From Piromyces finnis finn (taxonomy: Eukaryota; Fungi; Neocallimastigomycota): a DNA stretch of 24,003 nucleotides. The stretch spans positions 1 through 24,003 of the forward strand of contig MCFH01000148.1 of assembly GCA_002104945.1 (NCBI GenBank). The letters run 5' to 3'. The first letter of the stretch is position 1. Each line of letters begins with the position of its first letter. Positions 2,151 through 24,003 of the stretch are shown here, piece by piece. The notes below the pieces were generated by a model. It had not been told where the DNA came from and did not search any database. It saw nothing but the letters and a program-made list of their open reading frames with translations. Made by a program: the position numbers and the translations under genes.

Positions 2151-2863
2151 TGTAAAATTTTTATAAATGTAAAACAGATTATAAAATTTTTTACAATAAA
2201 ACAACAACACAAAAAAAGAAAAAAACAAGAAAAAAATTATTTAAAAAAAATATCTCTTTTTATTAATTTTACTTAGTTATTAACTAAATAATAGTCAATA
2301 ACAATTACATTGTTTTAATCAAGAAATTTTACATGTATTTATATTTTTTGTAAATTATATTTTAATATACTATTTATTTAGTTATACATATATTCAATAT
2401 AAAATAAACAAAACTAATTTAATACTAATTTAATTAAATAATAAAATGAATAAACTAAACTAAAACTAATTAAATACACTTTTGATTCAATTTGAGTGAA
2501 TTGCAAATTGAATACAGTCCATGTATTACCTATATATTAATTAAATATTAATAATACTATTATTATATATTTAAATTAAAAATGCTAATTTAAAATACGC
2601 TAAAGTTATTAAACTAATTTTAATTAAATAAAACTTTTAAAATTTAATTTGAATATTAAAATATTTAAATTTAATTATCCATTAATTAAATATTTATCCA
2701 AATTCCATTTCTAATTTTGATATTTTAAAATTAATCTTTATTTAATTATTCCATAAAATTTATACAATAATTTATAAACAATTTTCATTAAAATAATCAA
2801 AATTATTATTCAATAATTATATATTATATTTAAATAATTTAAAGATATACTTTTATCTTTACA
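2151..2863 (-). mobile_element. 3' LTR, family B (mirror of 4969-5691)
   Basis: TG...CA ends, adjacent PPT at about 2864-2874, homologous to the solo LTR at 20488-21190. Confidence 0.85.
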
Positions 2864-3949: not shown

Positions 3950-4968
3950 TTTTGTTAACAATATCTTTAAATTACATGGTTCCTGATCATCATTCTGATC
4001 GAGTACTCAATTTACTTCAGACTTTTGGAATCGTTTATGTAATTTGTTAAATATTAAACTTGCTTTTTCTACTGCAAACCATCCTGAAACTGATGGTCAA
4101 ACGGAGAGGGTGAACGGGATATTGGAACAATATCTCCGTTGTTTATTAACGAAAAACAGAATAACTGGGTTGATTTGTTACCTTTTTGCTGAATTTGCTT
4201 ATAACAATACTTTACAGCAATCAATCAATCAATCTCTGTTTTTCGCTAATTATGGGTTCAATCCAAAATTCAATCCTGAAATCCTTCAGCAAATAGACCA
4301 AATAGAGCTGAACAAAGAATTTTGGATATTAATGAAAACATTAAATTTTTAAAAGAAAACTTGATCAAGCAAAAGAAACCTACAAAAAGTATGCTGACCA
4401 AAAAGAATGGAATCCCCAAGTTTCGAAGTTGGTAAAAAGTTGGTTATTAAAAGGTATTAATCCTTCCAACAAAAATATTAAAAGAAAGCTCGCTGATCAA
4501 ATGCTTGGACCATTTGAAATAATCAAGAAGGTAAGTCCTTTAGCATTTGAATTAAAGTTACCAAACAATTTACGTGTCACCCTGTTTTTCATGTTTCGTT
4601 ATTAGAACCTTATAACGAAAATGAATTTATAAATAGATCAGTAATAAATAAAAGAAAAAATATTAAGTTAACTACTGATACTATTGATAGGATTCCTGAT
4701 AAGATTATTCAAGAAAGAAATTGTCATGGAAAGAAATCTTTCTTGATGACATGGAAAAATCTTGACGAAAATACTTGATCCCGGAAGATCAAATTTCAGA
4801 TGTACAAATGATCCAAGAATTTATAGAAAAAACAAAAAGTCTAGAAAAGAAATCAAGATCAAGTTTATACAAGGAATAACAATGGTATGATCAGACACAG
4901 ATATCAACCATTTGTAATTGATATTCCTTCAAAGAATAATCTCGCAGGACCCGACTTAAGGGCGAGAT
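3950..4968 (+). pseudogene. Mirror copy of element B integrase/chromodomain with PPT
   Basis: ORF 4044-4352 is the integrase core. aagggcgagat precedes TGTAAAGAT at 4969. Confidence 0.9.
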
Positions 4969-5691
4969 TGTAAAGATATAAAGTATATCTTTAAATTATT
5001 TAATAATAATTAATAATTATTGAATAATAATTTTGATATTTTAATGAAAAATTGTTTATAAAATTTATGTATAAATTTTATGGAATAATTAAATAAAGAT
5101 TAATTTTAAAATATCAAAATTAGAAATGGAATTTGGATAAATATTTAAATTAATGGATAATTAAATTTAAATATTTTAAATATTCAAATTAAATTTTAAA
5201 AAGTTTTTATTAATTAAAATTAGTTTAATAACTTTAGCGTAGTTTTAAATTAGCATTTTTAATTATAAATATATAATAAATAGTATTATTAATATTTAAT
5301 TAATATATAGGTAATACATGGACTGTATTCAATTTGCAATTCACTCAAATTGAATCAAAAGTGTATTTAATTAGTTTTAGTTTAGTTATTCATTTTATTA
5401 TTTAATTAAATTAGTATTAAATTAGTTTTGTTTATTTTATATTGAATATATGTATAACTAAATAAAATAGTATATTAAAATATAATTTACAAAAAATATA
5501 AATACATGTAAAATTTCTTGATTAAAACAATGTAATTGTTATTGACTATTATTTAGTTAATAACTAAGTAAAATTAATAAAAAGAGATATTTTTTTTAAA
5601 TAATTTATTTTCTTGTTTTTTTCTTTATTTTGTGTTGTTGTTTTATTGTAAAAAATTTTATAATCTGTTTTACATTTATAAAAATTTTACA
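4969..5691 (+). mobile_element. 3' LTR, family B
   Basis: TGTAAAGAT...AATTTTACA. Both ends align with the TSD-defined solo LTR at 20488-21190. Confidence 0.85.
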
Positions 5692-5965
5692 CTGCCATAG
5701 ATACTTCAGCTGAATACGCTTTACAAAAATCTAAAAGTATGTCGAGTGGTGAGACATTTACGAGTCAAGTTAATTTTATTGTTCCAGATGAAAAATGTTA
5801 TAGTTTAACAGCATTTCCTTTATTTATGTCAGAATTTAATATATGGATTAATGGATATTATGATGCCTACAATAATTTGAAATTCGATTTCACAAAATCT
5901 ATTAATCCTATTAAGTTTATTGATTTTTTATAAATCCTGTAGAATGTGGTGAAGAAAAAAAATTT
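5692..5965 (+). pseudogene. Coding fragment cut by LTR B, possibly a DDE (IS4-like) transposase remnant; mirror at about 1885-2150
   Basis: Open frame AIDTSAEYALQKSKS-MSSGETF...WINGYYDAYNNLKFDF begins at the LTR edge. The family guess comes from motif resemblance only. Confidence 0.3.
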
Positions 5966-6259
5966 CAAGATATAGTAAAGAATGACATTTTAAGTTTAGT
6001 ATTAAAAATCATATTATTAATAAAACATAATTCTTATATTATACATTTCATTCTCGTCCTTCTTCCCATTTGTGTTTTTTGTTGTTTATCATATATCCTT
6101 ATAATAAACTCGTTAAGTTCTAGTCTTAATTTCATATTTAATTTTTTATTATTTTCCTTCTATATACATATAATTTAATATTAAATTTTAATATTGAGTT
6201 ATCAATAAGTAATTGTATTGTATTATTTGTCATAAATATTACAATAAAATTACTACAAT

Positions 6260-6744
6260 TGTAAAAGGTTTATTATAAATTAGTTAATAAGTTAATAAAT
6301 AAGTTAAGTTAGTTATTAACTCTCTATACGAGTTAATAACTAAATAAAGTTTATAAAAAATAATAAAAGAACTAAAATAAATGTTATAACACAAAAATAA
6401 ATATAAACAAATAAATATTATTGTGAAATAAATTTACTTAAATAACTATTTTAATTATATCTTTTATTTATTAGTTATAATTATTGTACATTAATTATTA
6501 TTATAGTTATTAATTTACTTTAATACTAATGCTAAAGTATTTAGCATTTGTTTCCACTATACTATTTAACTATATTAGTTTATTTCCTTTACCACTTGAT
6601 TGGGTAAGGAAAATAAACTTTCTATTTAATTAATAACCATTAATATATGGTTATGCATAATTCTGGCCAATAAATGTTAACCAGAATATATGGTTTCAAT
6701 TGAAATATTTGGGGGCAAACTTATGGCTACAAATATTTCTTACA
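6260..6744 (+). repeat. Repeat D (solo-LTR-like)
   Basis: TGTAAAAGG...TTTCTTACA. Homology with the 12943-13421 copy stops exactly after TTACA. Confidence 0.65.
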
Positions 6745-6941
6745 AGTATTGTAATGTAATAATTTTATTACATGTATTAATATTTCACATAATAAAATTA
6801 TTATGTGAAGATATTAACTGGATTTAAAACAAATTCAGATAATATCTATAATTAGTTAAATATAATAATTATAATTAAATAATTTCAATAATTATTTTAA
6901 AACACCTTTAAAGTTCACCTTTAAAATTTTGATTCAGTGAA

Positions 6942-7447
6942 TGTAAAGTTTTGTAAAACACTAGATTAAACAAAACTTCAATAATACTAAATTTCTTTTT
7001 TAAAGACACTTTATTCTAATTTATAGTTTTATTATTTTTTATTAAAATGTTATTAACTACTTAATAGTCAATAACAATTACAACTATTTAAATTTACATG
7101 AAATTTCGAACTATTTATATTTTTTGCGATTACATTATAATATATGTAACTATTTTATTTATATTGCTATTCAATATAAAACTATCCTTAAGAATCTTAA
7201 AATATAATAATTTAATTTCACAATATTAAATGACAAGAATTTTAATGTAAATCTTTATGAAAATCCTTTAAAAGATTTTCATTAATTTTTTGAACTTTAT
7301 TTATTATAAATTTTATGTGTTACAATAAGTGATGAATAACTTTGGTTCACGTAACACAATAAAAATTTTTGTGATTGAGAGATTAGTTTTTCTCTTGAAG
7401 ATTATTAAATAAATCATTAAATTATTGATTATTTAATAATCTTTACA
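6942..7447 (-). mobile_element. 3' LTR of gypsy element A
   Basis: Follows the PPT at about 7448-7459 on the minus strand; TGTAAAG/CTTTACA termini. Confidence 0.65.
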
Positions 7448-10400
7448 ATCTTCCGTTCTAAGTCGAGTTCCTGCGAGACAGTTGGGGATTACTCTTTGAA
7501 GGAAGTTCGATAACGAATGGATTGTAAGAGTATTTAATTAACTCCTCTTGGGAATTTCTGTCCCCTTCTTTCTTCTACGCTGTTTATTAGTTTTATTTAT
7601 ATACTCTTGAATCAATTGTTTTTCAGGAATCTGATTCTGAGGGATACAGGTACGATCAGAGTCCTCGAAGCCTTTCCAGGAAACCGAATAGAATTATCTC
7701 CATTAATATTTTTCATTGAGTGTTTTTTTCAAGTACTTTTTGATTAAGTCGGGATACAAATGTATGTTTCTTTTTCTACTATAAGGGCGTTTAATATCTT
7801 CGAATTCATAATAGGGTTCTAAGAGAGAAACATGGAAAACAAGATGGCAACGCATAGTTTTAAGTAATTTCAATTTAAAGGAGACTGTACTGATTGATCA
7901 ATGATTCAAATGGTCCAATAAGTTGTTGAGAAAGTTTTTCTTAATACCAGAATTTGTAGATCTTTTCGAAGATAAACTTTGTTACCAATTTTGAAGCAGG
8001 AGGAATGATCTTCTTTTATCAGCATATTTTTTATAAGTTTCTTTAGCTTTATTCAAGTTAGTTTGGTGTAGCTTATATTCTTGTTTATGTCAATAACCTT
8101 TGCTCAACTGAACTAGGATTATCGTTTGAAGGAATAGTTGGATTAAATTTAAGGTGAAATCTGAAATTTGCGAAAAATGGTGATTGTTTCGTAGACTGTT
8201 GTAATGTATTGTTGTATGAAAATTCGGCGAAAGGTAATATATCTACCCAGTTGTTTGCTTTGAATTTATAAAGCAGCGAAGGTATTGTTCCATATTGCAT
8301 TCACCCTCTCCGTTGACCGTCGTTTGAGGATGGTTGGACGGAGAATGGTTAATATCAAGAAGACCACAAAGTCTATTCCAAAATTCAGACGTAAATTGTG
8401 AACACAATGGAATTGGGAAAACCATGAAGTTTGAAAACATGAGTAATGAAAGCGTCGGCAGCGATAGAAGATGTGGGAAGACATCGAAGGGCGATAAATG
8501 AGCCATTTTAGTAAGATGATCAACAACAACCATAATAGTAGTCATATCATGAGATTTGGTAATTCCACGATAAAGTCATTGAGATATCAGACCAAGGTCG
8601 AGATGGTGTATGAAGTGGCATAAGCAGGCCATAAGGTTATGTTTTGGGACTTTTTTTAGAATAAACAACACAAGAGCGAACAAATTTATAAACATCAGAA
8701 TTCAAAGAGGGCCAATAGAAGGAACGTTTGATTAACTCAATAGTCTTGTTGATACCAAAGTGTCCAGCAGTAATGGAATTATGGTGAAGTTTGAGAATGC
8801 GTAGCGAAGTGTCAGAGGAACATACAAAAGTCTTTGTACCAAAAGAGACCAGTATCATCACAGAGACGAAAGGCAGATATATCCTTGCAAGGGGATGAGC
8901 CATACCATTAGTTAGAACTGAGTAACTTTATTATAGAAAGAATCATTAGAAAGTTCATTTTTAATATCTTCGACATGAGAGGAGTTACAAGAGTCATAAG
9001 TAGAAGAATTTTAAACAGAAAAACCATAATCACTGTCCAGAATTATTAGTATTGTTCTGACTTTCGATCATGGCAGGACGACGAGATAGAAGATCAGGTT
9101 TACCAGATTTTTTTCCTGGACGATAGATAAGGTTAAAATTAAATCTTGACAAAAAACATATTCCAGCGGAATTTGTCGTTGCGAGAGCATTTCAGGTTTT
9201 CTAGGAAAAGTGAGGTTCTTGTGATCGGTAAAAATAGTGAATTGGTGGCGAGCACCTTCAATGTAATGACCCATTCCTCAAGTGCAGTCTTAATAGCTAA
9301 GAGTTCCTTATCATAAATAGGATAATTCTTTGAGGTCCGGTAAGACTTTAGAGAGAACGCAATAGGATGAAGTTTACCATCAAATTCTTGAGAAAGTATT
9401 GCACCGAAGCATAATTACTAGCATCAGTTTCAACAATAAATTGTTATTACTATCCGCATGTTTCAGAATAGGAGCTGACATGAACAGAGTTTTTAATAAA
9501 ATAAAAGCGTCCTGATCTTCTTTCATCCAGTTAAAAGCACATTCTTTCTAGTGAGTTTGTGAAGAGGATTTGCAATTTTAGCAAAGTCTTTAATAAAAAT
9601 TCTGTAATAGTTACATAAACAAATAAAAGACTGAACCTCCTTAACATTCTTGGGAACAGACCAATCGAGAATTGCTTTAACTTTATTTCGTCCATTTGCA
9701 ACCCATCTTTTGAAATGACATATCCAGAAAAGTGGTTTCTCAACATCAAACTCACATTTTTCTAATTTAACATAAAGATTATTTTCAAGCAGTTTCTTAA
9801 ATACTTTTTAACATGTTCATGATGTTCTTCGATATTATTAGAATAAATAAGAATATCATCAATATATGAGATAATAAAATCATCTAAATAGTCACTAAGA
9901 ACATCGTTAACGAAGTGTTGAAAAGGTTGTAGGTGCATTCTTTAATCCAAAAGGCATAACCAGATATTCAAAATGTCCATATCTAGTACAAAAAAGCCGT
10001 TTTGTATTCGTCACCTTCTTTATACGAACAAGATTATAAGCGGATTTAAGGTCTAATTTGGTGAAAATCTTAGCATTTTTCACCCTATCCAAAAGGTCAC
10101 TAATTAAAGATAAAGGATATGAATTACGATTGTAATATCATTCAACCTTCTATAATACAAAGTCTTAATGAACCGTCTTTCTTTTTAACAAACAAAATTG
10201 GGGCACCAGCAGGAGACGATGATTTCCTAATAAAACCTTTATTTAAATTATCATCAATATATTTTTTAAGTTCCTCTCTTTCAACTTCAGTTAATGGATA
10301 CAAAGGTCCATAAAATAAAGTTGAATCATCCTTAGCTTGATTTCACAATCATAAGGTCTATGAGGAGGCAACACTTCACAATTTATTTCGTTAAACTCTT

Positions 10401-11143
10401 CACTAGATTCTGAATATTGGGTTGGTACGGCGACCAATTTATCTTTATTAATATTTTTATCATTATTATTACATTCGTTATCACTATTACATGTTTCATT
10501 AATTTTGTTACGGTACATTTGACTTTTTTTATTAAAACTAATATATCATCATCGCTATCATCTTCATCATTAATGGTTCTAACAAGGCGCCTTTAACATA
10601 TTCTTTTTCTTCATTGTTGGGGAGGGTATCTACTTTCGACTTTTTGGTTAAGCTTCGGTCGAGAACATCATGATCTAACTGATCATTCTTCTTTCTTGAT
10701 TTCTCTTTCTTTTCCCATGATTACAGTGTCTGGCGCAGTATCCCGATCCCGAACTAAAATTGATTTTCTTGGAATCATAAAAAGCCCAGGATTGTGTTTT
10801 TAATCCATGGTAATCCCAAGAATTACATCGACACCAGGAACTTTCAAACTATATAATTGAATGGTTCAAAATGATTTCTACACCTTAACATGCACTTTTC
10901 ACTTCTTTCCATTATAAGAGAAATCCCATTATTAACTCCTGAACTCGGAAAGGTTCAATAGTTTCAAATTAATTCCAATTTCTTTAGCAAGTTTCAGGAT
11001 TAATAAACTTAATTCAGAGCCCGAACAACTAAAACTCTAACTTTAACTTCCGGAATATCATTTGTACTTAAATAAAAATCAATAATATTTAAATCTTTTT
11101 TGTTACCCATGACTCCCACTTTATAAATCCTTGGATTAACAAC
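7448..11143 (-). mobile_element. Chromoviral Ty3/gypsy element A internal region: degenerate protease-RT-RNase H-integrase-chromodomain; gag and 5' LTR absent
   Basis: Protease LV[D]SGSEL (~11010, 1-nt deletion) and DVILGLPW (~10810); [11 protein letters not shown]; [34 protein letters not shown] and YIDD; RNase H ETDASNY and FTDHKNL; integrase H2C2 region GHFGINKT...YWP. Many frameshifts. Confidence 0.93.
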
Positions 11144-11417
11144 TCACTCCTTCTCTTTGATGTTTCTCGTCTTGCAATATCTTATATTGGATTGGGCAGA
11201 ACCAAAACATCTCTCCAAGTGGGCACCATAAAGTCTTGGATAAATTCTTTGAATTTTCATATTGTACAAACACATGATAATGTTTTTGTGCCTGTCCAAT
11301 ATGTTCCGTAACCAAAAGATATCTCATCCCAGTAAGAGATTTAAGATAAGTCTTAATATCTTGATAGAATTCTAATGCGATAGGATTTAAAGTTAAAATA
11401 AAATTTTTATAACCCAT
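11143..11417 (-). pseudogene. rep: Rep HUH endonuclease fragment of EVE1
   Basis: MGYKNFILTLNP (motif I) and KHYHVFVQY (motif II). Relative to Rep2, 5-nt and 7-nt deletions put AHLERCFGSAQSNIRYCK (motif III) out of frame. Truncated at the gypsy junction. Confidence 0.9.
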
Positions 11418-11438
11418 AATTTCCATCCGATATGATAG

Positions 11439-12830
11439 ATGTCAGCTGTTGTAGCGGATATTGGCCGAAAAGCAGCACCATATATTAATCAAGCTATAAG
11501 AAAATACGCTAAAGAACAGATTGTTAACGCTAAATATAAATTAGAACAAAAGTATAAACAGACTCAGATTGACAAAGCTTATAAGCAAGATAAGCCAATG
11601 GCTAAAAAAGCTAAGACTAAAAGTAAGCACACGAAAGTTAAGGGCAAAAAGTACAAATCCCGTGGGTTTAAGGTTCGTAGAAGAAGATTTAAAGGAAGAG
11701 CAATTAATGTTAAGGAGGATAGAGAAGGGTATTCAAAGACCTTTAAAAAACAAAAGGTCACTAAACAACAACAACGAAAGATTAACCGAAGATTTAAGAA
11801 CGGATATTCACCGTTCAAAGAGTGTATTGAAGACGCCTTTCAAGAAACCATTCTTCAAGTTACAGGAAAATGCAAATGGATCTGGAGATGTCACAATCAC
11901 CTGGAATATTTAAGTAAGACCTTTGCTAACTGGCCTTGTTATTCAGGTAACCCAGGTACAATCCCAACATATGCTAAACAAGATAAGTATTTAACATCAC
12001 CTAATCAAGAAGTATACTTTTCACAATTTAAGCATACTTATGAAATATATAACCCGACTAATTATGATATGAATCTTGTTATATATGATATTGTTGCTAA
12101 ACAAGATAGTACAGATAGTGTTGTTAATGCTAATTATAATTATTATAATGATCCAGCTAATTCAGCACATCGTAATCCTATTAGATGTATAGAGTTAGGG
12201 TTAAGTGCGGGTAATGGTCAGTATACAGCCTATGAAAGCAGCACTACACAGTATCCTATTGTAGCAGATAGTACAGCTAAAGAACTCCATGATATTACTC
12301 TTGGACCTACAGAAAGTTACCCCTTCAATATATATTGGACTATAGTTAAAAAGAGAACATTCAAATTACAACCTGGTGCGACCATGGTACATAAATTTAT
12401 TCATAAACCAAAGGCTCTGGTTAGTAGAGGATATTGGGGGTATAGATATGGTAAGGATATGAAAATGGGTGATGGAGATAGTCGTAGAGCTATCAAAGAT
12501 ATCACCTCTGGATGTTTATTTAAGTATTGGGGTCAAGTCTCTGGTTCAGCCTATTCCACTGGTTCAGGACCTACAGGAGATGGTCAGTATGTTAATATGA
12601 CACAAATGCATGACCAAGTAACCACTTTAAGTGGTCGTATTATGTTCAAAGAATATATAGAAAATAAATGGTATTTTATGAATGAAAGATATACATTTAC
12701 CTTTAAAACAGATCTTAACACATATAAACCTTCTGATGAAGAAGACCTACCTGTTGTTAATGATGCAGAAGTTAAACCATCAACTGATGCTGATGGAACA
12801 GGTATGGACACAGATAATCCAGTTAATTAA
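11439..12830 (+). CDS. cap: CRESS-DNA virus capsid protein, 463 aa, intact
   Basis: K/R-rich N-terminal arm. Conserved blocks shared with 17645-19114 (YEIYNPTNYDMNLVIYDI, YPFNxYW, LQPGAT, WGQVSG, TLSGRIM). Ambisense to rep. Capsid identity is inferred from context, not from a database search. Confidence 0.85.
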   Translation: MSAVVADIGRKAAPYINQAIRKYAKEQIVNAKYKLEQKYKQTQIDKAYKQDKPMAKKAKTKSKHTKVKGKKYKSRGFKVRRRRFKGRAINVKEDREGYSKTFKKQKVTKQQQRKINRRFKNGYSPFKECIEDAFQETILQVTGKCKWIWRCHNHLEYLSKTFANWPCYSGNPGTIPTYAKQDKYLTSPNQEVYFSQFKHTYEIYNPTNYDMNLVIYDIVAKQDSTDSVVNANYNYYNDPANSAHRNPIRCIELGLSAGNGQYTAYESSTTQYPIVADSTAKELHDITLGPTESYPFNIYWTIVKKRTFKLQPGATMVHKFIHKPKALVSRGYWGYRYGKDMKMGDGDSRRAIKDITSGCLFKYWGQVSGSAYSTGSGPTGDGQYVNMTQMHDQVTTLSGRIMFKEYIENKWYFMNERYTFTFKTDLNTYKPSDEEDLPVVNDAEVKPSTDADGTGMDTDNPVN

Positions 12831-12876
12831 ACACATGTAAATATAAAACAATAAATAAATAAAAGATATGGGTGTA

Positions 12877-12891
12877 AAATAAACTTTATTT
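12877..12891. terminator. Candidate bidirectional poly(A) signal AAATAAA-C-TTTATTT in the viral 3' intergenic region
   Basis: Lies between the convergent cap and rep stops. The identical motif is present in EVE2 at 19164-19178. Confidence 0.5.
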
Positions 12892-12940
12892 AATTTATTA
12901 TAATTCTAGTGTTATCTACATTATCAATAACTTCATAATT
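12890..12940 (-). pseudogene. rep: Rep C-terminal tip of EVE1
   Basis: NYEVIDNVDNTRIIIN* matches the Rep2 end EYSVEDTVDNTRIVIN*. Confidence 0.85.
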
Positions 12941-12942
12941 TT

Positions 12943-13421
12943 AGGTGTTTTTATAATATTAGTTAATAAGTTATATAATTTAGTTAATTAAGTTAGTTAT
13001 TACCTCTCTATACGAGTTAATAACTAAATAAGTTTATAAAAAATAATAAAAGAAAAATAAATATTATAACACAGAATAAATACAAGTATATATAAATATT
13101 ATTATGAAATAAATTACTTAAATAATTAATTTTAATTATATCTTTATTTATTTAGTATAATTATAATACATTAATTATTATTATAGTTACTAATTTACTT
13201 TAATACTAACGCTAAAGTATTTTACGTTAGTTTAACTATACTATTTAACTATATTAGTTTATTTTCTTTACCACTTGATTGGGTAAAGCAAATAAACTTC
13301 CTATTTAATTAATACCATTAATATATGGTTATACATATATCTGGCCAATAAATGGTGACCAGAAAATATGGTTTCAATTGAAATATTTGTGGGCAACTTA
13401 TGGCCACAAATATTTCTTACA
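12943..13421 (+). repeat. Third, diverged copy of repeat D, 5' end clipped at the EVE1 junction
   Basis: Collinear with 6260-6744 (ctctatacgagttaataac, accacttgattgggtaa, ttatggc...ttcttaca). Confidence 0.8.
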
Positions 13422-14986
13422 ATAGATTCGTTGCATATAAAATTACTTTAATGTGATATTCTATTATTTTAAAGAAAAAAAGTTTAAAAAAAAATAGTAG
13501 AGAGTGTTTTTTTGGAAAAGAGAAATAAAAAGGAATTTATATCATAACACTGTAAATTAGTATAATATATTTATAGGTTTAAATAATTTATATAGTGGAT
13601 TAATACATTAGGTTTTTTCTCTATTCTAATTGTAAAGTATAATAAATTAAATTATTATAACACACAAAAAGTAAGAATTTAAAATAATAAAACAAATTCA
13701 AAACTTATTTATAACTTTATATTTTAATCTGAGTTTCCTTATTATTGTGTTATTAATATATTATTTTATAATTCCCAACTTGCTTATCCTATTTAATATA
13801 TTGATACTTGATTTATTATATATAAAAAATCTGTATCACCCAATTGTAAGAATAATAATTATTTATTGAATAATTATTAATTCTTATTTAATTATTTTTT
13901 TAACTATTAATTAATTAATTATTTAAATTATTAGCATACATTCATTTAAATTACTATAAACATTTATTTTATTAATATTAATTATTCATTTACTTAATTT
14001 AAATTTATTTAATATTATATTATTAATTATTTATTTAATTAGTAAATTATTTAAAATAATAGTAAACATTCATTTATTTTATTAATTAAAATTTTTGTAT
14101 TACATTTTATAAGAACATTATGTATTTTATTTTACATTTGTATTTTGTTTATGTATCGTATCTTGAATAACTTATAGAAACAATTAGAAGATATAAATAA
14201 ATATTAGGAAAAATTGGATATTAAGGTTTTTTCGAAATATATTTCGGTTTTACTTAATATTACGATGATTGATATATTAGTTATCAATCGAATATCTTTT
14301 TAGGTTTTTCTTCTAGTCTTTTCCTAAAAAGATTATTTGTTAAGATTAGATATTCTTTATTAAACTTTAAATTATTAAATAACATTATAAATAAAAGAAA
14401 TCTGGAATTCCACTAAAGAATCCAGAGTTATTATTATAAGAACTATTATAATAAATAACCTTTATTAAAAAACAATATTAATAAAACATTTTAAATTAAA
14501 TAACATTAAAGTTTTGTGTTGTTTATTATATTTCCTTATAATAAACTCTTATTTAAGATAAGTATAAAATTTTATTTATTTTAATTTCTCAGTTTAATAA
14601 TACTAATTATTGTTAAATTGTAGATAATAATTATTATTATATAATATAAATAATAATAATTATTACACCAATATGTAAGAAACATAGATAAATTCTATAT
14701 AATTTATCTATTTTCTTATTAATTAATATTTATTATAATATTTATTATTATTTATTGTTTAATACATTAATTTAATACATTATTTAATACATAATTTGAT
14801 ACATTAATTAAATAAATTAATTAAATACATTGATTAAATACATTGTTTTATTACATTAATTTAGTTGTATCATTTTAACCAATCCATGTATAATGTATTA
14901 AATTACTATAAAAGGATAATCTTGATTCTCTTTTGAAAAATCAAGAGTTATTATTATATAAATTTATTAATAAATAAAGTATTAAT

Positions 14987-15265
14987 TATTTTAAAAGTAA
15001 TGTTTATCTAACGTGTGTTTTTATATTTAAGTGTTAATATTTATTATTTTTGTTTATTATTATTTTAAAAGTAATGTTTATCTAACGTGTGTTTTTATAT
15101 TTAAGTGTTAATATTTATTATTTTTGTTTATTAGTATTTTTATATAATAAACTCGAAATTAATGTTTTTATTTTCTTTCTCAAATTGGTAATATTTTTGT
15201 TTATTAGTATTTTTATATAATAAACTCGAAATTAATGTTTTTATTTTCTTTCTCAAATTAGTAAT
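14987..15265. repeat. Two adjacent tandem duplications (2 x 74 bp, then 2 x 73 bp)
   Basis: gtaatgtttatctaacgtgtg at 14997 and 15071; ctcgaaattaatg at 15152 and 15225. Confidence 0.9.
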
Positions 15266-16109
15266 AGTTAATTATTTAATTATTATTAATTTGTAGAAGA
15301 AGTTATTTATAATTTATTTATAAGTAACTTCTTACACAATACCAACTTGACCATTGTAAAATATTCTAAACTAGTTCAGGTTTGTATACGTACACTAAAC
15401 TAAATTAACACAATTAGACTAATTAATTTTAATAATATTTTATTTATTTATTTATTTTAAAACTATACTAACTAAACAACCGTTGATTACTTTACCGTGA
15501 AGGTTATTTTACCAGGGCCCTCACTAGGTAATCAATATATATTTTTATTATTTAAAACAAAACTAATTATAACTAATGTTAATTTATCTAAACAAAATTA
15601 ACCTATACGATTTTCCAACTATCGTTTCAATAGTTGATAAATTTTCTTTATTTATACTTTTTAAATAAATTGATTATTTGTATTAAACTATTTAAATTCA
15701 AATTATTTAATAAAGAATTTTCTAAATTTAAAATAAAGTTTTGATTTATTTACTATATGGTTGATTATATTTCAAACATATATTTAATTTATTTATTTCT
15801 AATTTTGAGGCTTAGTTTATAAAAAAAATTTTTTTATTATTTAAAATATTTATTGGTTAAAATTTATTTAATTTAAAATTTTATTTTATCATCGAAAACT
15901 TTATCTTATCATAAAATTAAATTTTACATAAATTTATGTAAATGTATTGTGATATTAAATGTTTGTAAAATTTACGGTACATTAATTTAATATATTATAC
16001 ATTATTTTAAATACGTATTAAATACATTATTTTATTAATACAATATTTTACAACCATCTGCTAAATCATTAATTCTTAAACATGATAAATGATTGATTTT
16101 TGATTTAAT

Positions 16110-17220
16110 TTATCCTTTTCGGTTATTTAGTAAAATCCATAATGAATTATCATTATCATTATTGCAACTTGTAAAGATATCAAACGCCTCAACTTGATAT
16201 CTTTAATGTAACTTAAGCCACAAGTATTATTGTTTAAGTTACACAAATTATATTCAGAAAAAGAAAATGAGACATAATTTATTTATTAATAATTAAAGTT
16301 TAAAACAAAATAAATTATTAATTTATTTTTAATGTTTAACAAGTAAATTAATATTCTCAATTTAAATCCCTAGTTTTAGTGTTGTTTTTTTATAGAAATA
16401 GATAAATAATAAATGATTAATATATCAATAATACATGGGCACATATTCAAATTAAATAGTACTTAATTTGAATTGCCAATTGTATTTTACTAAAAATAGT
16501 TATAGTTTAAATATTTATTAATAATTAAGATTTTAGTGTAGATTTTAAATAATAATATATAAGAAATAAATAGTTATAATATAATATAAATGTATTTAGG
16601 AAAAATATAAATAGAAGATATTTTTCATCATTTTATCGATGTAATTGTTATTATTAAAATTCTATTATAATAAAAGATATTTTTAATAAAACAATTTTTA
16701 TTTTTATTTTAAATTTAGTGTTATTGTAATAGAATAGATATCCTAATCTATTCTTTCAGTGTTCAACATTACACAACTTCCATAAATAATCTTACTATCG
16801 ATTCCTTTACTTTCTAAAACTTGTAAACATTTATCGAAATAAGTATTATAAAACTTTATTATTTGTGATTTAGGATCTATAATTGGGAAGTAGTTATTAT
16901 CTTCGAGATCAAACGATAATTTCCACACACTTTTATTTTCGGTACAGTTTATTAATTTCAGTGTTCCGGTTTCTTCGTTAATAATTTCTATACATTTATT
17001 ATTATATTGTAATAAATTTGAGTTTATATTATTAAATTTATTACTATCCTTACACAATTCAATATTTAGTGCTGCTGTTTGATTGGCGTTTATGGTTAAG
17101 CATAAGGAACAGTCGTAGACATTCACTAAATATCCGTCTTTATGGTTGTTATAGTCTGGTATGTACCATTGTTGGGATTCATCGTCAGGATTACAAATAT
17201 CTAGAATAGCTTCGTACTTT
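16110..17220 (-). pseudogene. Ricin-B/beta-trefoil lectin-like gene remnant, split by a solo LTR and 5'-truncated by viral DNA
   Basis: LDICNPDDESQQWYIP, CLTIN, NKCIEI, SVWKL, DKCLQV. Removing the LTR and one TSD restores IIYGSCNNDNDNSLWILLNNRKG*. Confidence 0.7.
16170..16773 (+). mobile_element. Solo LTR, family C, with 5-bp TSD CAACT
   Basis: TGTAAAGATATC...CATTACA. CAACT at 16165-16169 and 16774-16778. Near-identical to the reverse complement of 21953-22570. Confidence 0.95.
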
Positions 17221-17263
17221 ATGCTAAAGGATTAACTGTCAAAATGAAATTTTTGGAAGTCAT
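17221..17263 (-). pseudogene. rep: Rep N-terminal stub of a third virus (EVE-X)
   Basis: MTSKNFILTVNPLA*, compared with MGAKNFILTLNPSAL and MGYKNFILTLNPIAL. It sits directly beside a nonanucleotide. Confidence 0.85.
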
Positions 17264-17310
17264 CGTTCGAAAAGCTGTCTGTATAGTATTACCTAGGATA
17301 GCTTACGGAC
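17263..17310 (+). other. Left (hybrid) rolling-circle origin; nonanucleotide TAGTATTAC at 17284-17292
   Basis: Imperfect 5' arm aagctgtctg and 3' arm ctaggatagctt. Confidence 0.9.
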
Positions 17311-17320
17311 GAAAACGTTC

Positions 17321-17330
17321 TTTATATATT
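17321..17330. promoter_or_regulatory. Candidate TATA element next to the origin (also at 20228-20237)
   Basis: tttatatatt is conserved after both origins and reads TATATAAA on the minus strand toward rep. Confidence 0.45.
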
Positions 17331-17644
17331 TTTTCGCGTAACACATGAAAAAATTTTTAATTGGATAAGCCTCTAAATATTATTGACCAATAATATTTGA
17401 GGCGTTTACATTATTGTATACAATAATGTATAATATATTGTAATGTACATTAAATTAAAATACATTAATTTAATTAATTACAACATAAAGTATCGTGACA
17501 CATAGATGTCACGTGATAAGAAATTCAGAATATGTAATTCGATGGCATGAAAAAATCAAAAAAAAATAGTCGAACTTTCGACACCTCGACAAGTCCGGCC
17601 TAAAGAAAAAAAAAAGATTTTTTCAGCGGAAAGCAGAATGAAAT

Positions 17645-19114
17645 ATGGCGAATGGAGTATCAGGTGACCTATTTGGAACCTTATTTTCTCTGAAAAGTAT
17701 AAAAAGAGAAAATATTTCTCCCTTTTTCTTTATGGGAAAATACAATTTTCCTAGTTTTAATACTAGAGTCGATTATTCTAACGCGTTAAAAGCTTTAGCT
17801 GGTGCAGCAGTCGGTTCTTTTACGAGTTCTATGAGTAAAGGTAGGAAAAAGGGTAATGGAAAGTACCCGAGTGGTGGAGGTAAGTCCTCTAGACGTAGAA
17901 AGACTGGAAGAAAGTCGAAGCCCAAGTTTATTGGATTACCAGTCGGTACTAAAACAAGAAAGAGACGTAAGTACAATAGAGTCAGGAATGTCAAGGCCGA
18001 TGTCAATGGATATACAAAGACATTTAAGAAACAAAGGGTTACTAAACAACAACAACGTAAGATTAATAGAGCATTTAAAGAAGGCGTTAGTCCATATGTT
18101 ATTCAAGATGAGTTTAATTATCTTGATACTAAACCTGGTTCTACTAATGCTGTTAAGTGGGTATGGGAGTGTAATGCTACTTTTAGAAATCTTTGCGACG
18201 CTTGGCAAATGACCAATGTTACAGATAATCAACAGGCATCTGGAAACAATAATAGTTTTGGACCTTCAGTTCAATATTCACAAATGACTGAAAATAATGC
18301 TCTCTATTTTAGTCAACATCAATATAAATATGAAATTTATAATCCTACTAATTATGATATGAATCTTGTTATTTATGATATAATTTGTAAGGAAGAAACT
18401 CCTGGAAGTGTTGAAAGAGGTGGATGGGATAAAAGAAGTACTATTCAGAATGAATTGTCTAGTACTGATTATTTCACTCCTGTTAATCTAATGTGTAGAG
18501 GTAATGATGGTATTGCAGATGTTGTTCCTGGTACAGGATATACAGGAGATTTGGCTATTGTAACAGATTCTAGTTCGCGTACTGGAACAGATGTATTTGA
18601 TATACAAATGAAACCCACTGATAGTTATCCTTTTAATGTTTATTGGAAGGTCGTTAAAAAAAGAATTTTAAGATTACAACCTGGTGCAACACATACGCAT
18701 GTGTTTACATATAGACCGAAAATGCTCTTAAAAAGAGGTTATTGGGCATGGAAGTATAAAAAACATTTTAAAAATATTTCCAATACCATGGCCAATGCAG
18801 GTATTCCTGGATTTACTTGTGGTACACTATTTAAATTTTGGGGACAAGTAAGTGGTGATACTGAAAGTTCACAAATAACAGATGGTACTGTTGTACAACC
18901 TTCTAATAGAGTTTGTACTTTAAGTGGTAGAATAATGATTAAAACATTCCATGAACAAAAACATTATAGAATTGATCCAAAGACTAAATATACACTTGTA
19001 AAACATCAACAACAATGGACTCCAGTTGATGAAGAAGATTTACAAGTTGTTACAGATGTTCATATATCAGATCCAAATGATGATAGAATACCAGAATCAC
19101 AGTTTGGTGATTAA
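17645..19114 (+). CDS. cap: CRESS-DNA virus capsid protein, up to 489 aa (true start may be a downstream Met), intact
   Basis: R/K-rich arm SRRRKTGRKSKPK...RKRRKYNR; conserved blocks shared with the EVE1 capsid; converges on rep. Confidence 0.87.
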   Translation: MANGVSGDLFGTLFSLKSIKRENISPFFFMGKYNFPSFNTRVDYSNALKALAGAAVGSFTSSMSKGRKKGNGKYPSGGGKSSRRRKTGRKSKPKFIGLPVGTKTRKRRKYNRVRNVKADVNGYTKTFKKQRVTKQQQRKINRAFKEGVSPYVIQDEFNYLDTKPGSTNAVKWVWECNATFRNLCDAWQMTNVTDNQQASGNNNSFGPSVQYSQMTENNALYFSQHQYKYEIYNPTNYDMNLVIYDIICKEETPGSVERGGWDKRSTIQNELSSTDYFTPVNLMCRGNDGIADVVPGTGYTGDLAIVTDSSSRTGTDVFDIQMKPTDSYPFNVYWKVVKKRILRLQPGATHTHVFTYRPKMLLKRGYWAWKYKKHFKNISNTMANAGIPGFTCGTLFKFWGQVSGDTESSQITDGTVVQPSNRVCTLSGRIMIKTFHEQKHYRIDPKTKYTLVKHQQQWTPVDEEDLQVVTDVHISDPNDDRIPESQFGD

Positions 19115-19180
19115 TAAATGTAAATATAAAACAATTAATAAATAAATAAATGGGTATGGTGTAAAATAAACTTTATTTAA

Positions 19181-20167
19181 TTAATTTATTACAATTCTTG
19201 TGTTATCTACAGTGTCTTCAACACTATATTCTTCTAACTGGTTAAAGTCAGTTCTATAACCAATTGGAAGACCACCTAAATGAACTCTTTCAGGTGGGTA
19301 CATGTTAATTAATTCTATTCTTCTTTCCCACTGTTCTCTTCTTTCAAATTCATCTACATTTCTATAGATAGATGAAAGTTTTTGAACAGAAGTAAAAATG
19401 ATTAATTTATAATTATTTTTAGCAGAACCACCTTTAATATTTAAATTATGAACTCTATAATCAATTAAATTAATAAATTCTTCCGGTTTCATAACACCAG
19501 CTCTAAAGTCATCAAAGACAGCAACTTCAGATGGATTATCTAAAGTTATACCAGAATAAAAACCAGATTTATCGTACTTTAATTCATCAAAGTACATTTC
19601 ATCTGGGTCTTCAATACCTTTATCGTTATAGTATTTTCTAATTAATTCTTCAGCCCTTTCTGATTTTCCTATAGCAGAAGGGCCTTGGATGTAATAAACC
19701 TTTACGTGCTTTCTCCAAGAACCTAATGATAATCTGTTCTTCTTCTGTAAATTTATCTTCTGATAAGTGTTGTAGAGTATTGCAGGCAACTCCTTTGGGT
19801 CGTTGCAATCCTCTAGATAACCTATTGTAAAATTTCCACCTTTAAGAACTGGTTCACCTTCTTCTTAAATAAGCATAGCAGTAACTCCTTCTCTAACATG
19901 TTTCTCATCTTCTGCTTTACAATATCTTATATTTTGTTGAGCAGAACCATAACAACGTTCTAAATGAGCACCTTTAAGTCTTCTAATAGATAAATTCTTT
20001 GAATTTTGATATTGAACAAAAATATGGTAGTGTTTTTGTGCTTGACCTATATGTTCAGTAACCAAAAAATACTTCAATCCCACTAAAGATTTAAGATAAG
20101 TTTTGATGTCAGCATAAAATTCCAAGGCACTTGGATTCAAAGTTAAAATAAAATTTTTCGCACCCAT
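19181..20167 (-). pseudogene. rep: Full-length Rep (HUH endonuclease plus SF3 helicase, 328 codons) with one in-frame TAA at 19865-19867
   Basis: Motif I FILTLN, II HYHIF, III YCKAE; Walker A GPSAIGKS, Walker B VFDDF, motif C IIFTSV, Arg-finger-like WERRI. The two ORF-track pieces are in one frame (...AMLI*EEGEPVLKGG...). Confidence 0.95.
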
Positions 20168-20177
20168 AGTCCGATAA

Positions 20178-20212
20178 AAGCTATCCTAGTATAGTATTAC
20201 CTAGGATAGCTT
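20178..20212 (+). other. Right rolling-circle origin stem-loop; TAGTATTAC at 20192-20200
   Basis: Perfect 12-bp stem aagctatcctag/ctaggatagctt with an 11-nt loop. Confidence 0.97.
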
Positions 20213-20247
20213 ACGAACGAAACGTCCTTTATATATTTTTTCGCGTT

Positions 20248-20368
20248 ATAATAATTTGGGCATGGACACTTCCACGACACTTAGATTTTTTTTTTCAAAA
20301 ATTAAAAATTTCCATTTTTTGAAAAAAAAATCTAAGTGTCGTGGAAGTGTCCATGTCCAAATTATTAT
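20248..20368. repeat. 55-bp-arm inverted repeat with 11-nt loop
   Basis: 20248-20302 pairs with 20314-20368 with one G-T mismatch. It extends to 20242-20374 with wobble pairs. Confidence 0.95.
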
Positions 20369-20487
20369 GACGTGCCAGTGTCCATAATTTTTTGGGTCGT
20401 CCGGCGAAACGACCCTTAGGACGAGCAATGTCACAATAACATAAAAATTTAAAAAATTTGGACACATGGAAAAGAATTCAAAGTATA

Positions 20488-21190
20488 TGTAAAGATATAA
20501 TATATATCTTTAGATTATTTAATAACGAATTATTAATTATCAAATAATAAATTAATATTTAGTAAAATTAATTATAAAATTTTTGAATAAATTTTATGGA
20601 ATAATTTAATAATAAATTATTTTATAATAATTCCGTTATATTTAAATTAAGATAAATATTTAAATTTAAGGAATAAAAGAATTTTAATTAAATTTAAATA
20701 TTTCAAATATTTTAAATAATTAAAATATTTTTTAAATACTTTTTATTTAATTTTAGAATAAATTATATTTTTTTATTTAAATTTAGAATAACTTAATAAT
20801 TTTAACTTAGTTTTAATTCAATTTTGAGTTTACTCAAATTGAATTAAAAGTATAATGAATTTGTTTTAGTTTAGTTCTTTTATTTTATTATTTAATTAGA
20901 TTAGTGTTGTTTATTTTATATTAAATATATGTTTATTTAAATAGAATAATATGTTAGAATATAATTATGAAAAAATATAAATACATGTAATTTTTGTTTA
21001 TTAAATCGATGTAATTGTTATTTTCAATTTTTTAATTATTAACTATTATATAGTTAATAATATTTTTAAGAGTTTAAATAAAAATGTTTTTTTTAAAAAT
21101 AAAAATTTAATGTTTTATTTTTTATTTTTGTGTTAATAAAAATTGTTTTGTTTTAAGTATGAAATCTGTTTTAAATCTTATACTTTTACA
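20488..21190 (+). mobile_element. Solo LTR, family B-related, with 5-bp TSD GTATA
   Basis: TGTAAAGATAT...TTTTACA. GTATA at 20483-20487 and 21191-21195. Collinear with 4969-5691. Confidence 0.93.
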
Positions 21191-21879
21191 GTATAAAATT
21201 TTTAATCCTTGAAATTATTAAATTTTTTAAATTATTAAAATTTTATTATTAAAATTTTTATTTTAAATTTATTAACTATTAACTATTTACAATAATTATA
21301 TTAATTATTAATTTGTAAAAATTAAATATTTTATAATTAAACAATAATTAATAAAAATTAAAAATGTAATAATTAAAATTGTTCATGTATAAAAAGATAA
21401 AAAGAATAGAAATTGACAAAAAATTACGAAGCTTTAGCGTTAGTAATTTTTTAACTTAAAGTTAATAAGATATATAAACTCCTATAAAACCTAAAATTTT
21501 AAAAATTTTAATATTTTTAATAACTTAATATATGTTGATATTAAGTTATTGTTAAAATAAAAATATTAATTATTTTCCTTTATATAAATATTATTAGCTT
21601 TAAGCCTTTAATAGGAAAGCGTATTATATTAGATAATTAATATAACTAGTGTGCTTACCACACTTTTCTTTATTAAAAATCGGTTTTTATCAATGATACA
21701 AGATACATAGAAAAATATTTTTATGAATAATAACATTTAATTCTTTTATAATTTGTATAGCAATTATTGATGTATATAATAATTAAACTCTATATTAGTA
21801 TAAATTATTATGACGCAAATATTACATATATATTAGAATAATTAATTACACAAGAAAGAAAAGTTATAAAAAGAGAGAT

Positions 21880-21952
21880 TGTAAAGATATCAAACGCCTC
21901 AGCGTGATATCTTTAATGTAAGTTAAGCCATAAATATTATTGTTTAAGTTAC
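21880..21952 (+). mobile_element. First 73 bp of a family-C LTR with preceding PPT, interrupted by an oppositely oriented family-C element
   Basis: aagagagat|tgtaaagatatcaaacgcctc...aagttac matches the start of 16170. Confidence 0.85.
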
Positions 21953-22570
21953 TGTAATGTTGAACACTGAAAGAATAGATTAGGATATCTATTCTATTAC
22001 AATAACACTAAAATTTTAAAATAAAATAAAAAAAATTGTTTTATAAAAATATCTTTTATTATAATAGAAATTTTATTAATAACAATTACATCGATAAAAT
22101 GATGAAAAATATCTTCTATTTATATTTTTCCTAAATACATTTATATTATATTATAACTATTTATTTCTTATATATTATTTTTTTAAAAGCTACACTAAAA
22201 TCTTAATTATTAATAAATATTGAAACTATAACTATTTTTAGTAAAATACAATTGGCAATTTAAATTAAGTACTATTTAATTTGAATATGTGCCCATGTAT
22301 TATTGATATATTAATCATTTATTATTTATATATTATTTACCTATTTCTATAAAAAAACATATTAAAACTAGGGATTTACATTGAGAATATTAATTTACTT
22401 GTTAAATATTAAAATAAATTAATAATTTATTTTGTTTTAAACTTTAATTATTAATAAATAAATTATGTCTCATTTTCTTTTTCTGAATATAATTTGTGTA
22501 ACTTAAACAATAATACTTGTGGCTTAAGTTAAATTAAAGATATCAAGTTGAGGTGTTTGATATCTTTACA
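21953..22570 (-). mobile_element. 3' LTR of gypsy element C
   Basis: Reverse complement is near-identical to 16170-16773. PPT agagagagagat at about 22571-22583. Confidence 0.93.
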
Positions 22571-23933
22571 ATCTCTCTCTCTAAGTCGAGTTCCTGCGAG
22601 ATTAATTTATAAAAAATACTTTCTCGAAGGAATTTCAATTACAAATGGTTGGTATCTGTGCTTGATTAAACTACCAACTTTATTCTTTCTAATTTCATGG
22701 AGGAGTCGCTCGACTTATGTTTTAATTTTTTAGAGTTATTTTCAAACTCTTGTATTAATTGTTTATCTGAAATCTGATCTTCAGAAGGTGAATTTATCAA
22801 ATTCTTTCCACGATAACTTATAAAATGTTTCACCATTGACAGATTTCATCTTCTCAATTTTTCTCTGGAATTTTTCAATAAAAATCTGTGTTAGGGTGAA
22901 TATTCCTCTTCCTACGGTTAGATCTATCGTTAAATTCATTTTCAAAATTATAGTTTTAACAATGAAACATGAAAAACTGGATGACATCTCATTGTCTTTG
23001 GAAGTTTCAATTTGAAAGAGAGAGAACTAATCTTTTCAATAATTTCAAAATGGGCCAAGCATTTGAGGTGCTAATTTCTTCTTTAAGTTAGTTCCAGGAG
23101 AATCTTTCAATAAACCATACCTTCTTTCCCACTTCGAATTCCGGGGTAATCATTCTTTCATATCGGCATATTTCTTATATGTTTCTTTAGTTTTTTTTTT
23201 TTTTAATTTTTCCTTTAATAATTTAAAGTTTTCATTCATATCAATATACTCTTGTTTAGCTCTACTAGGTCTATCATTAGCTGGAATTCTAAGCTGAACT
23301 TTGGATGAAAACCATAATTAGCAGAGAATGGGGATTGATTTATAGATTGTTGTAAAGTATTATTATATGCAAATTCAGCAAATGGGATAAGATCAACCCA
23401 GTTATTCTGTTTTTTATTTATAAAACAACGGAAATATTGTTCTAATATGCCGTTCACCCTCTCCGTTTGACCATCTGTCTGCGGATGGTTAGCAGTCAAT
23501 AATGAATGATTGATATTAAGAAGGTCACAAAGTCTTGACCAAAAATCAGAAGTAAATTGCGAGCCTCTATCAGAGATAATGGAATCAGGAAGACCATGCA
23601 AACGGAAGACATTAGTAATAAAAGCATCAGCAGCAATCGAAGCAGTAGGAAGACAACGTAAAGGAATGGCGTGAGTAAATTTAGTAAATCTATCGACAAC
23701 AACCATGAGAGTTGTCATATCTCTGGACTTCGGAAGATCAACAATAAAGTCGATAGAGATATCAGACCAAGGCCTACTATGAGTGTCCAGGGGGATAACA
23801 ATCCGTAAGGCTTATGTCTGGGGACTTTGGATTTGCAACAATTCACGCAAGATTTGATAAAAGATTTAACGTCTGAATGAAATCTTGGCCACCAAAAGTT
23901 TCTGGAAATCAGTTCAGTGGTTTTCTTAATACC
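22571..23933 (-). pseudogene. Gypsy element C integrase and chromodomain, frameshifted
   Basis: ORF 23236-23718 VVVDRFTKFTHAIP...SDRGSQFTS...HPQTDGQTERVN; FYKLSWKEFDK...EDQISDKQLIQE; upstream KKTTELISRNFWWP. Confidence 0.92.
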
Positions 23934-24003
23934 TGTAAAAATTTTAAAATTTAAAACAGATTATAAAATTTTTTACAATAAAACAAAAACACTAAATAAA
24001 ATA
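23934..24003 (-). mobile_element. End of a family-B LTR inserted into the element C integrase (runs off the window)
   Basis: Matches 2151-2220 (aaaacagattataaaattttttacaataaaacaa). Confidence 0.88.

Follow-up and report, generated by a model that had tools for sequence, protein, structure and literature searches.

Several groups of gut cressdnaviruses have been given hosts through endogenous copies of their genes: the Naryaviridae and Nenyaviridae were assigned to Entamoeba, the Vilyaviridae to Giardia, the Kirkoviridae to parabasalids, and CRESSV1 to Blastocystis (PMC7493932, PMC9615429). Among families with circular Rep-encoding single-stranded DNA (CRESS-DNA) genomes, the Genomoviridae are the only one with a confirmed fungal host (PMC7493932). 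The Neocallimastigomycota are mentioned in neither source. The locus described here comes from Piromyces finnis, which the published assembly table lists for GCA_002104945.1 and places in the Neocallimastigales (PMC6690862). The window that was analyzed is the whole of its 24,003-bp contig MCFH01000148.1, and coordinates are positions in that contig unless another is named. The region of viral sequence in this window is, as a whole, very probably best explained as a cluster of endogenous viral elements (EVEs) in the P. finnis nuclear genome, derived from an undescribed clade of CRESS-DNA viruses.

The P. finnis cluster resembles the protist cases in that genomic copies of Rep-like and Cap-like genes in a gut microbial eukaryote match free circular genomes from metagenomes, and in that the host is not an animal. 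It differs from them in that the host is a fungus, the Rep/Cap clade has no member of a named family among its matches, and one of the copies is complete from origin to origin. With the Genomoviridae it shares the fungal host, an ambisense genome, and a capsid gene encoded on the nonamer-bearing strand, and one genome with a capsid of the present family (L003) has a Rep of the geminivirus/genomovirus type. Genomoviruses have ambisense genomes of about 2.2 kb, in which the nonamer strand carries the capsid gene and Rep is of the Gemini_AL1 type. In contrast, the Rep in the window is of the Viral_Rep type and not Gemini_AL1, the genomes measure about 2.8–3.1 kb, the capsids have 430–490 amino acids (aa) and no Pfam match, and the host is an early-diverging anaerobic fungus. 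Membership in the Genomoviridae was rejected on the Viral_Rep-type Rep, Gemini_AL1 being found only in the chimeric relative L003. The Circoviridae have genomes of about 1.7–2.1 kb and capsids of about 230–320 aa; membership there was likewise rejected, with a unit of 2908 nt and capsids of 463–489 aa in the window, and no Circoviridae-named protein occurs among the relatives listed. The lineage is set apart from both families by these features. Host assignment from endogenous elements is a kind of finding already known; the lineage and the host appear to be new.

The viral features of the window fall into two elements, EVE1 and EVE2, which are listed here in order. ORF stands for open reading frame.

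11030–11426, minus strand: Rep1 remnant of EVE1, a broken gene, detected by tblastn with Reps of the window and of free genomes as queries; the position of its lower limit is uncertain (11030–11111)
11439–12830, plus strand: capsid gene cap1, an intact ORF of 463 codons
12831–12892, no strand: short 3′ intergenic region of EVE1
12893–12937, minus strand: Rep C-terminal tail of EVE1; viral sequence stops at 12937
17222–17263, minus strand: start of a third, diverged Rep (14 codons; partial genome X), cut at the host junction; tblastn 71% over 14 aa, E 0.005–0.007
17272–17305, plus strand: left origin copy of EVE2, with the nonamer TAGTATTAC at 17284–17292 and a degraded 5′ stem arm
17306–17644, plus strand: intergenic region upstream of cap2, homologous over 252 nt (68% identity) to the sequence that precedes the capsid gene of L018, a free circular genome
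17645–19114, plus strand: capsid gene cap2, an intact ORF of 489 codons with a disordered basic N terminus and a jelly-roll core in the predicted protein
19115–19180, no strand: short AT-rich 3′ spacer of 66 nt where cap2 and Rep2 converge, with conserved counterparts in EVE1, the further P. finnis locus L009 (92.5%), and the free genome L004
19181–20167, minus strand: Rep2, a broken gene of full length encoding a HUH endonuclease and a superfamily 3 (SF3) helicase, with one in-frame stop and no frameshift
20178–20212, plus strand: right origin copy of EVE2, with a 12-bp stem and an 11-nt loop holding TAGTATTAC at 20192–20200
20213–20487, plus strand: right-hand remnant, with about 35 nt matching the left origin, then a 129-nt hairpin, then about 115 nt of unassigned, moderately GC-rich sequence

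EVE2 (17222–20487) consists of one complete unit-length genome between two TAGTATTAC origins, with short outer pieces of at least one further genome. The distance from nonamer to nonamer is 2908 nt, against 2768–3085 nt for the free genomes. As DNA, the right origin hairpin folds at −10.3 kcal/mol (z −5.1), and the left origin at −3.9 kcal/mol (z −1.2). Between the two origin copies, identity is 90% across a stretch of 72 nt, outside which they are unrelated; on the left side of the nonamer the similarity is 68%, and on the right side 87% (p 0.03). Because the match is confined to 72 nt and the similarity shifts at the nonamer, the outer pieces are assigned to at least one other genome. The third Rep start, short as it is, is made credible by the second origin copy that directly adjoins it. 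On its left, EVE2 meets a lectin-like host ORF at 17221/17222, and on its right the viral sequence is cut off at 20487 by long terminal repeat (LTR)-like sequence that begins at 20488. The hairpin in the right-hand remnant (20244–20372) is near perfect over its 129 nt (−55.9 kcal/mol, z −18.8) and begins exactly at the point where the right origin copy ceases to match the left copy. Candidates for it are the intergenic region of another genome copy, a fold-back at the junction, and a small inverted-repeat element.

The geminivirus-related DNA of Nicotiana genomes, like other integrated multimers of rolling-circle replicons, offers a described case of chromosomal copies of a Rep-encoding circular single-stranded DNA virus in which the origin occurs more than once. 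EVE2 is alike in its multiple origins, as expected from integrated multimeric replicative DNA. It is unlike the Nicotiana case in virus lineage and host kingdom, in having a central unit flanked by partial copies that differ from it, and in being part of an array cut by retrotransposons.

EVE1 (about 11030–12937) holds a truncated, frameshifted Rep remnant, the intact cap1, and a 15-codon Rep tail, with most of Rep gone. The Rep1 remnant spans only about the first 100–135 Rep residues and has at least one frameshift, probably two; its N terminus is 64% identical to that of Rep2, and its Pfam match to REP_ORF2-G2P is weak. The tail corresponds to the last 15 Rep codons (tblastn 73% over 15 aa), and the 3′ intergenic region beside it has 85–87% DNA identity to that between cap2 and Rep2. 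EVE1 has lost its origin region, as the starts of Rep and cap1 lie only 12 nt apart. EVE1 is a circular permutation of a genome different from EVE2, cut within Rep, and reads as Rep start, cap1, 3′ spacer, and Rep end. That cap1 is wholly open next to a truncated and frameshifted Rep remnant could be explained by chance, recency, or host retention.

A first-pass annotation of the same letters had read 11143–20482 as three distinct, related CRESS-DNA genomes endogenized in a probable gut fungus, and its overall interpretation is supported, with every element that it listed present. Its three Rep N termini are those of the Rep1 remnant, Rep2, and the 14-codon third start, all on the minus strand. 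Its two divergent capsids of 463–489 aa are intact ORFs with 39% identity across 409 aa (E 6e-78), and the capsid genes lie, as it had stated, on the nonamer strand, with TAGTATTAC on the plus strand at 17284 and 20192. The cluster sits where it was placed, though its left edge is nearer 11030–11111 and its right edge is 20487, where the LTR-like sequence starts.

The setting of this cluster in the fungal genome is seen in a second contig. The 348,583-bp P. finnis contig MCFH01000057.1 (contig 57) encodes the cap1 protein as well; window positions 3949–22792 are 99.3% identical to this contig, with 0 mismatches in the cap1, cap2, and Rep2 ORFs. Since the viral ORFs are identical in the two, the window is a redundant copy of a locus deep inside a large fungal contig, and since the same arrangement sits within 348 kb of fungal sequence the viral locus is no chimera. 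Two of the outcomes that could have undone the first-pass reading, a chimeric contig or one that is not fungal, are answered by the viral ORFs in contig 57, and the anaerobic fungus that it had proposed as host is the one to whose assembly the contig belongs. Its claim of endogenization holds as well, with junctions that abut host retroelements and the lectin-like ORF in this same arrangement. Viral sequence is contiguous with host sequence in a large contig and has lost integrity relative to the free genomes, as expected of endogenous elements: Rep2 carries a stop, Rep1 is truncated and frameshifted, the origin region of EVE1 is gone, and the left origin stem of EVE2 is degraded. Both capsid ORFs are intact.

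The features that define the Cressdnaviricota are all found, namely a HUH Rep, an SF3 helicase, an origin hairpin with a nonanucleotide, a small circular free genome, and a jelly-roll capsid. Intact Reps from free genomes align with Rep2 as a single tblastn high-scoring segment pair over residues 4–328 of 328, with one stop. The endonuclease part falls just below the Pfam cut-off for Viral_Rep (E 1.7e-5, 25.4 bits against 26), and the HUH motifs FILTLN, HYH, and Y..K align with those of free-genome Reps. The helicase part matches Pfam RNA_helicase at 27.2 bits, against a cut-off of 21.5, and has Walker A GPSAIGKS and Walker B FDDF in the alignment. The Rep profile matches solved structures of circovirus and nanovirus Reps, nuclease domains included, with full-length matches to PDB 9pqq and 7lar.

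Copies of Rep are annotated in the fungal genome as hypothetical proteins (BCR36DRAFT_407683, BCR36DRAFT_415806, and BCR36DRAFT_416125). The public gene models give Rep2 introns; these were rejected because free-genome Reps align to the genomic DNA at full length in one segment pair. Models on two identical DNA copies of Rep2 disagree in length (300 versus 281 aa). Judged by these alignments, the introns in the public Rep models are artefacts of gene prediction.

The two capsids retain all 28 invariant columns of the capsid family alignment, and the cap1 core is 60–61% identical to the free-genome capsids P0005/P0007. Pfam gives no match for cap1, cap2, or the capsids of free relatives. The AlphaFold model of cap2 has a mean predicted local distance difference test score (pLDDT) of 73.7 and a predicted template-modeling score (pTM) of 0.71, with a beta-rich core mostly at pLDDT 85–98 and an N terminus that is disordered and basic. 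Against the PDB this model gives weak matches to jelly-roll capsids, including satellite tobacco necrosis virus (STNV; probability 0.99) and picornavirus VP2, and against BFVD it matches hundreds of CRESS capsids, the best of them unclassified (E 1e-43 to 1e-14). The jelly roll that the first-pass annotation expected is thus what the model predicts, and the capsid is assigned a single jelly roll from these fold matches and not from strand-by-strand topology. Unclassified CRESS capsids of 330–450 aa from environmental and fecal sources, such as those of Circovirus-like genome DCCV-5, Sewage-associated circular DNA virus-7, and Blackfly DNA virus 16, are alike in fold (BFVD, Foldseek probability 1.00, E 1e-21 to 1e-14, template-modeling score 0.4–0.6) and unlike in sequence, with only 10–18% identity to cap2. 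In a library of 1.84 billion proteins the capsid family comes out as 52 clusters at E ≤ 1e-30, a discrete set beyond which matches are weaker and confined to a short stretch.

Redondoviruses have genomes of about 3 kb and a conserved third ORF that overlaps the capsid gene. Genome size is similar here, and both capsid genes of the window contain a +1-frame ORF at the same place, on the plus strand at 11569–11913 (114 codons) and 17856–18212 (118 codons). The stop-free +1 runs extend over 122 and 125 codons in cap1 and cap2, and over only 40–79 codons in four relatives. A conserved third ORF is unsupported, since only the two endogenous copies have a long open frame there, in a lysine/arginine-rich part of the gene where stops are rare; from this pattern the +1 frame is probably a by-product of lysine/arginine-rich coding and not a gene. 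No redondovirus-named match was returned by the cap2 sequence search or the BFVD fold search, or occurs among the best 120 Rep relatives.

Free relatives of these genes are numerous in public metagenomes. The search with cap2 returned about 50 homologues at 32–42% identity, nearly all on contigs of 2.7–3.2 kb (Logan and ENA assemblies), and scans with the capsid alignment gave one locus in IMG/VR and two loci in JGI metagenomes. For Rep, the helicase part is 65–76% identical to free-genome Reps, and a profile of 22 Reps retrieved 226 relatives, almost all on contigs of 1–3.2 kb. The best identities to free-genome proteins reach 76% for Rep and 61% for Cap. The lineage novelty that the first-pass annotation had left to be tested finds support: no virus name occurs among the best 120 of the 226 Rep relatives, and the only two named capsid relatives are an unclassified 'Cressdnaviricota sp.' and the mislabeled MH782432.1 ('Gemycircularvirus sp.'). 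Literature searches by the run, contig, and protein accessions of the free genomes found no paper, and those joining CRESS or Cressdnaviricota with names beginning in Neocallimasti, with Piromyces, or with anaerobic fungi found no relevant one. No report of a CRESS virus or other single-stranded DNA virus in anaerobic gut fungi was found in these searches.

The ambisense layout of EVE2 recurs in all six free genomes examined. In four of the six (L004, L010, L011, and L018) the nonamer TAGTATTAC lies on the capsid strand and the 11-nt loop of the right origin recurs, and L004, L010, and L011 also have ACGAACGA downstream in common. Terminal direct overlaps of 28 nt in L004, 19 nt in L018, and 30 nt in L019 indicate that these genomes are circular. 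The free genomes have a G+C content (GC) of 29–33%. These free viruses are circular, about 2.8–3.1 kb long, with a capsid of about 430–490 aa encoded on the nonamer strand and a HUH/SF3 Rep of about 320–340 aa on the opposite strand, the two genes converging on a short AT-rich 3′ spacer.

The genome L003 (MH782432.1, 3085 nt) pairs a 459-aa capsid of the present family with a geminivirus-type Rep (Gemini_AL1 and central domain). Most relatives carry a Rep of the circovirus-like kind, so this capsid family has undergone exchange of Rep and Cap modules. A sequence-only search of the PDB with the geminivirus-type Rep of L003 gave no match.

Additional endogenous copies are found in P. finnis and in other anaerobic fungi. 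A third P. finnis locus, L009, on the 291-kb contig MCFH01000065.1, encodes a Rep that is 93–96% identical in protein to Rep2 and holds the last 128 codons of a cap2-like gene. At the DNA level the two Reps show mostly synonymous differences, with a proportion of synonymous differences (pS) of 0.56–0.80 and a ratio of nonsynonymous to synonymous proportions (pN/pS) of about 0.05, which indicates that they diverged as functional viruses and integrated separately. In Piromyces sp. E2, four capsid homologues and several Reps lie on one 155-kb contig. Part of it (L005, KZ150875.1, 8337–12472) carries two capsid genes head to head (9857–8829 and 10127–11302) with a Rep after each, another clustered and rearranged array; no canonical nonamer lies between the two genes. 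Three Neocallimastix assemblies share an identical 286-aa Rep-derived ORF (L012–L014, 8001–8920), found also on several metagenome contigs, with one frame change near its end and no capsid within 8 kb.

In a neighbor-joining capsid tree, a different set of free genomes groups with each of cap1, cap2, and the E2 copies (core identity 61%, 41%, and 70%, respectively), and the endogenous capsids fall in three separate subclades among the free genomes. The separate capsid groupings, together with the synonymous divergence of the Reps, point to repeated integration.

The host sequence around the viral cluster contains the following features.

7700–11029, minus strand: degraded, 5′-truncated Ty3/gypsy-type pol (reverse transcriptase, RNase H, integrase zinc finger, integrase core, SH3) that adjoins the Rep1 remnant
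12960–13426, no strand: LTR-like repeat of about 470 nt, about 90% identical to 6284–6755
16170–16773, plus strand: solo LTR (TG...CA) flanked on both sides by the 5-bp target-site duplication CAACT (16165–16169 and 16774–16778)
about 16779–17221, minus strand: ricin-B-lectin-like ORF fragment (translation, Pfam Ricin_B_lectin) that extends to the left EVE2 junction
21953–24003, minus strand: Ty3/gypsy element cut short by the contig edge, represented by an LTR (21953–22570) and its integrase end, with Pfam rve and a pol fragment at 22572–24003

EVE1 thus lies between the degraded pol on its left and the repeat of about 470 nt on its right. Fragments of the pol ORF match Pfam RVT_1, RT_RNaseH, Integrase_H2C2, and SH3_Tf2-1, and no gag and no 5′ LTR occur between it and the viral sequence. 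The first-pass annotation had described host LTR elements with target-site duplications. This holds for the solo LTR at 16170–16773, which is 97–99% identical to the inverted LTR at 21953–22570; duplications were not established for the other LTR-like repeats. For the pair at 6284–6755 and 12960–13426 neither the ends nor a target-site duplication could be fixed, the left copy lying inside a palindrome. The lectin-like ORF, whose Pfam match (E 1.7e-4) is under the curated cut-off, is broken up by the solo LTR, and the viral DNA of EVE2 may have landed within or next to this host gene. The AT-rich spacer between EVE1 and EVE2 contains two adjacent tandem duplications at 14985–15261 (74 nt twice, 100%; 73 nt twice, 97%). 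A tRNA scan of the window gave no match.

The base composition of the window, with a GC of 14–20% in non-coding and 30–34% in coding or viral sequence, fits an anaerobic fungus. The left third (1–7900) is a near-perfect palindrome with arms at about 161–3970 and 3949–7694 that are 89–100% complementary. Positions 1–3970 are an inverted copy of 3949–7900, and contig 57 lacks the second arm and continues from the single arm into different sequence. The palindrome probably arose as an artefact of long-read assembly at the end of the contig.

Taken together, the free relatives and the endogenous copies make it likely that anaerobic fungi are the hosts of a large unnamed group of metagenomic virus genomes of about 3 kb. 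In the mechanism proposed here, a clade of CRESS-DNA viruses of this size would replicate in anaerobic gut fungi. Because rolling-circle replication by Rep starts at the nonamer, multimeric replicative DNA is expected, and the integrated DNA may have been multimeric or recombinant replicative DNA of co-infecting relatives that was joined to the chromosome by illegitimate recombination. Retrotransposon insertions and deletions would afterwards have trimmed and separated the pieces. EVE2 is presumably young, given an intact capsid ORF, a Rep with just one stop, and a hairpin that is still perfect at one of the two origins; EVE1 would be older, or was more damaged at integration. Several independent integrations would thus have occurred in anaerobic gut fungi, which would make these fungi the natural hosts of the clade. 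We have moderate confidence in the fullest form of this account, in which the Neocallimastigomycota are natural hosts of a family-level CRESS-DNA clade of about 3 kb that is still circulating, abundant in public runs, and unnamed, with integration both recent and recurrent and some capsid genes perhaps retained by the host.

Several points weigh against this account. Possibly a single locus was assembled twice, as the window and as contig 57, in which case the two are not independent evidence. The shift in similarity at the nonamer (68% versus 87%) rests on about 115 nt. No episomal copy is seen among the P. finnis proteins found, which are all on contigs of 24, 291, and 348 kb. Integration shows that viral DNA reached the nucleus and is no proof of productive infection.

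One alternative is that one or both capsid genes have been kept by the host as domesticated genes and are more than young relics. The uninterrupted 463 codons of cap1, beside a Rep remnant of 300–400 nt that is truncated and frameshifted, would fit such retention, as would the preservation of all 28 invariant family columns in both capsids and the long open capsid ORFs of Piromyces sp. E2. Recency alone, however, explains an intact ORF, and the public gene model spans only part of cap2. The argument for domestication draws on the state of the ORFs, and we regard it as unlikely.

A second alternative is that the fungal genome captured by chance the DNA of viruses that belong to another gut organism, or of ingested virions, with the fungus never a productive host. 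Anaerobic fungi live amid very many CRESS viruses, infection is not proven by integration alone, and the assembly shows no episomal contig, all of which suit chance capture. Against it stand copies from at least three capsid subclades at several loci in two genera, and the two P. finnis Rep copies diverged in the pattern of functional viruses. The unusually low GC of the free genomes (29–33%) is also as expected for a very AT-rich host group. Chance capture is quite unlikely on this evidence.

It is very improbable that free viral DNA of the culture was misjoined to fungal contigs as an assembly artefact or contamination: although the window is short and parts of it are probably misassembled, as the left 7.7-kb palindrome absent from contig 57 indicates, the same junctions recur deep within the 348-kb contig, at host repeats the viral genes are interrupted or cut short, another P. 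finnis locus lies on a 291-kb contig, and comparable loci occur in independent assemblies of other species. None of the three alternatives is favored over endogenization of viruses that replicate in anaerobic gut fungi.

Most CRESS-DNA viruses in gut and fecal viromes have no known host and are often wrongly tied to the animal. The P. finnis locus does for anaerobic gut fungi, key fiber degraders in herbivores, what endogenous copies did for gut protists. Several 'hypothetical proteins' in Piromyces and Neocallimastix annotations turn out to be viral relics with artefactual introns, and clusters of Rep (more than 200, unnamed) and of the capsid (about 50) become a testable virus–host system. 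If the account given here is true, the Neocallimastigomycota would have their first associated DNA-virus lineage, and fungi their second CRESS lineage.

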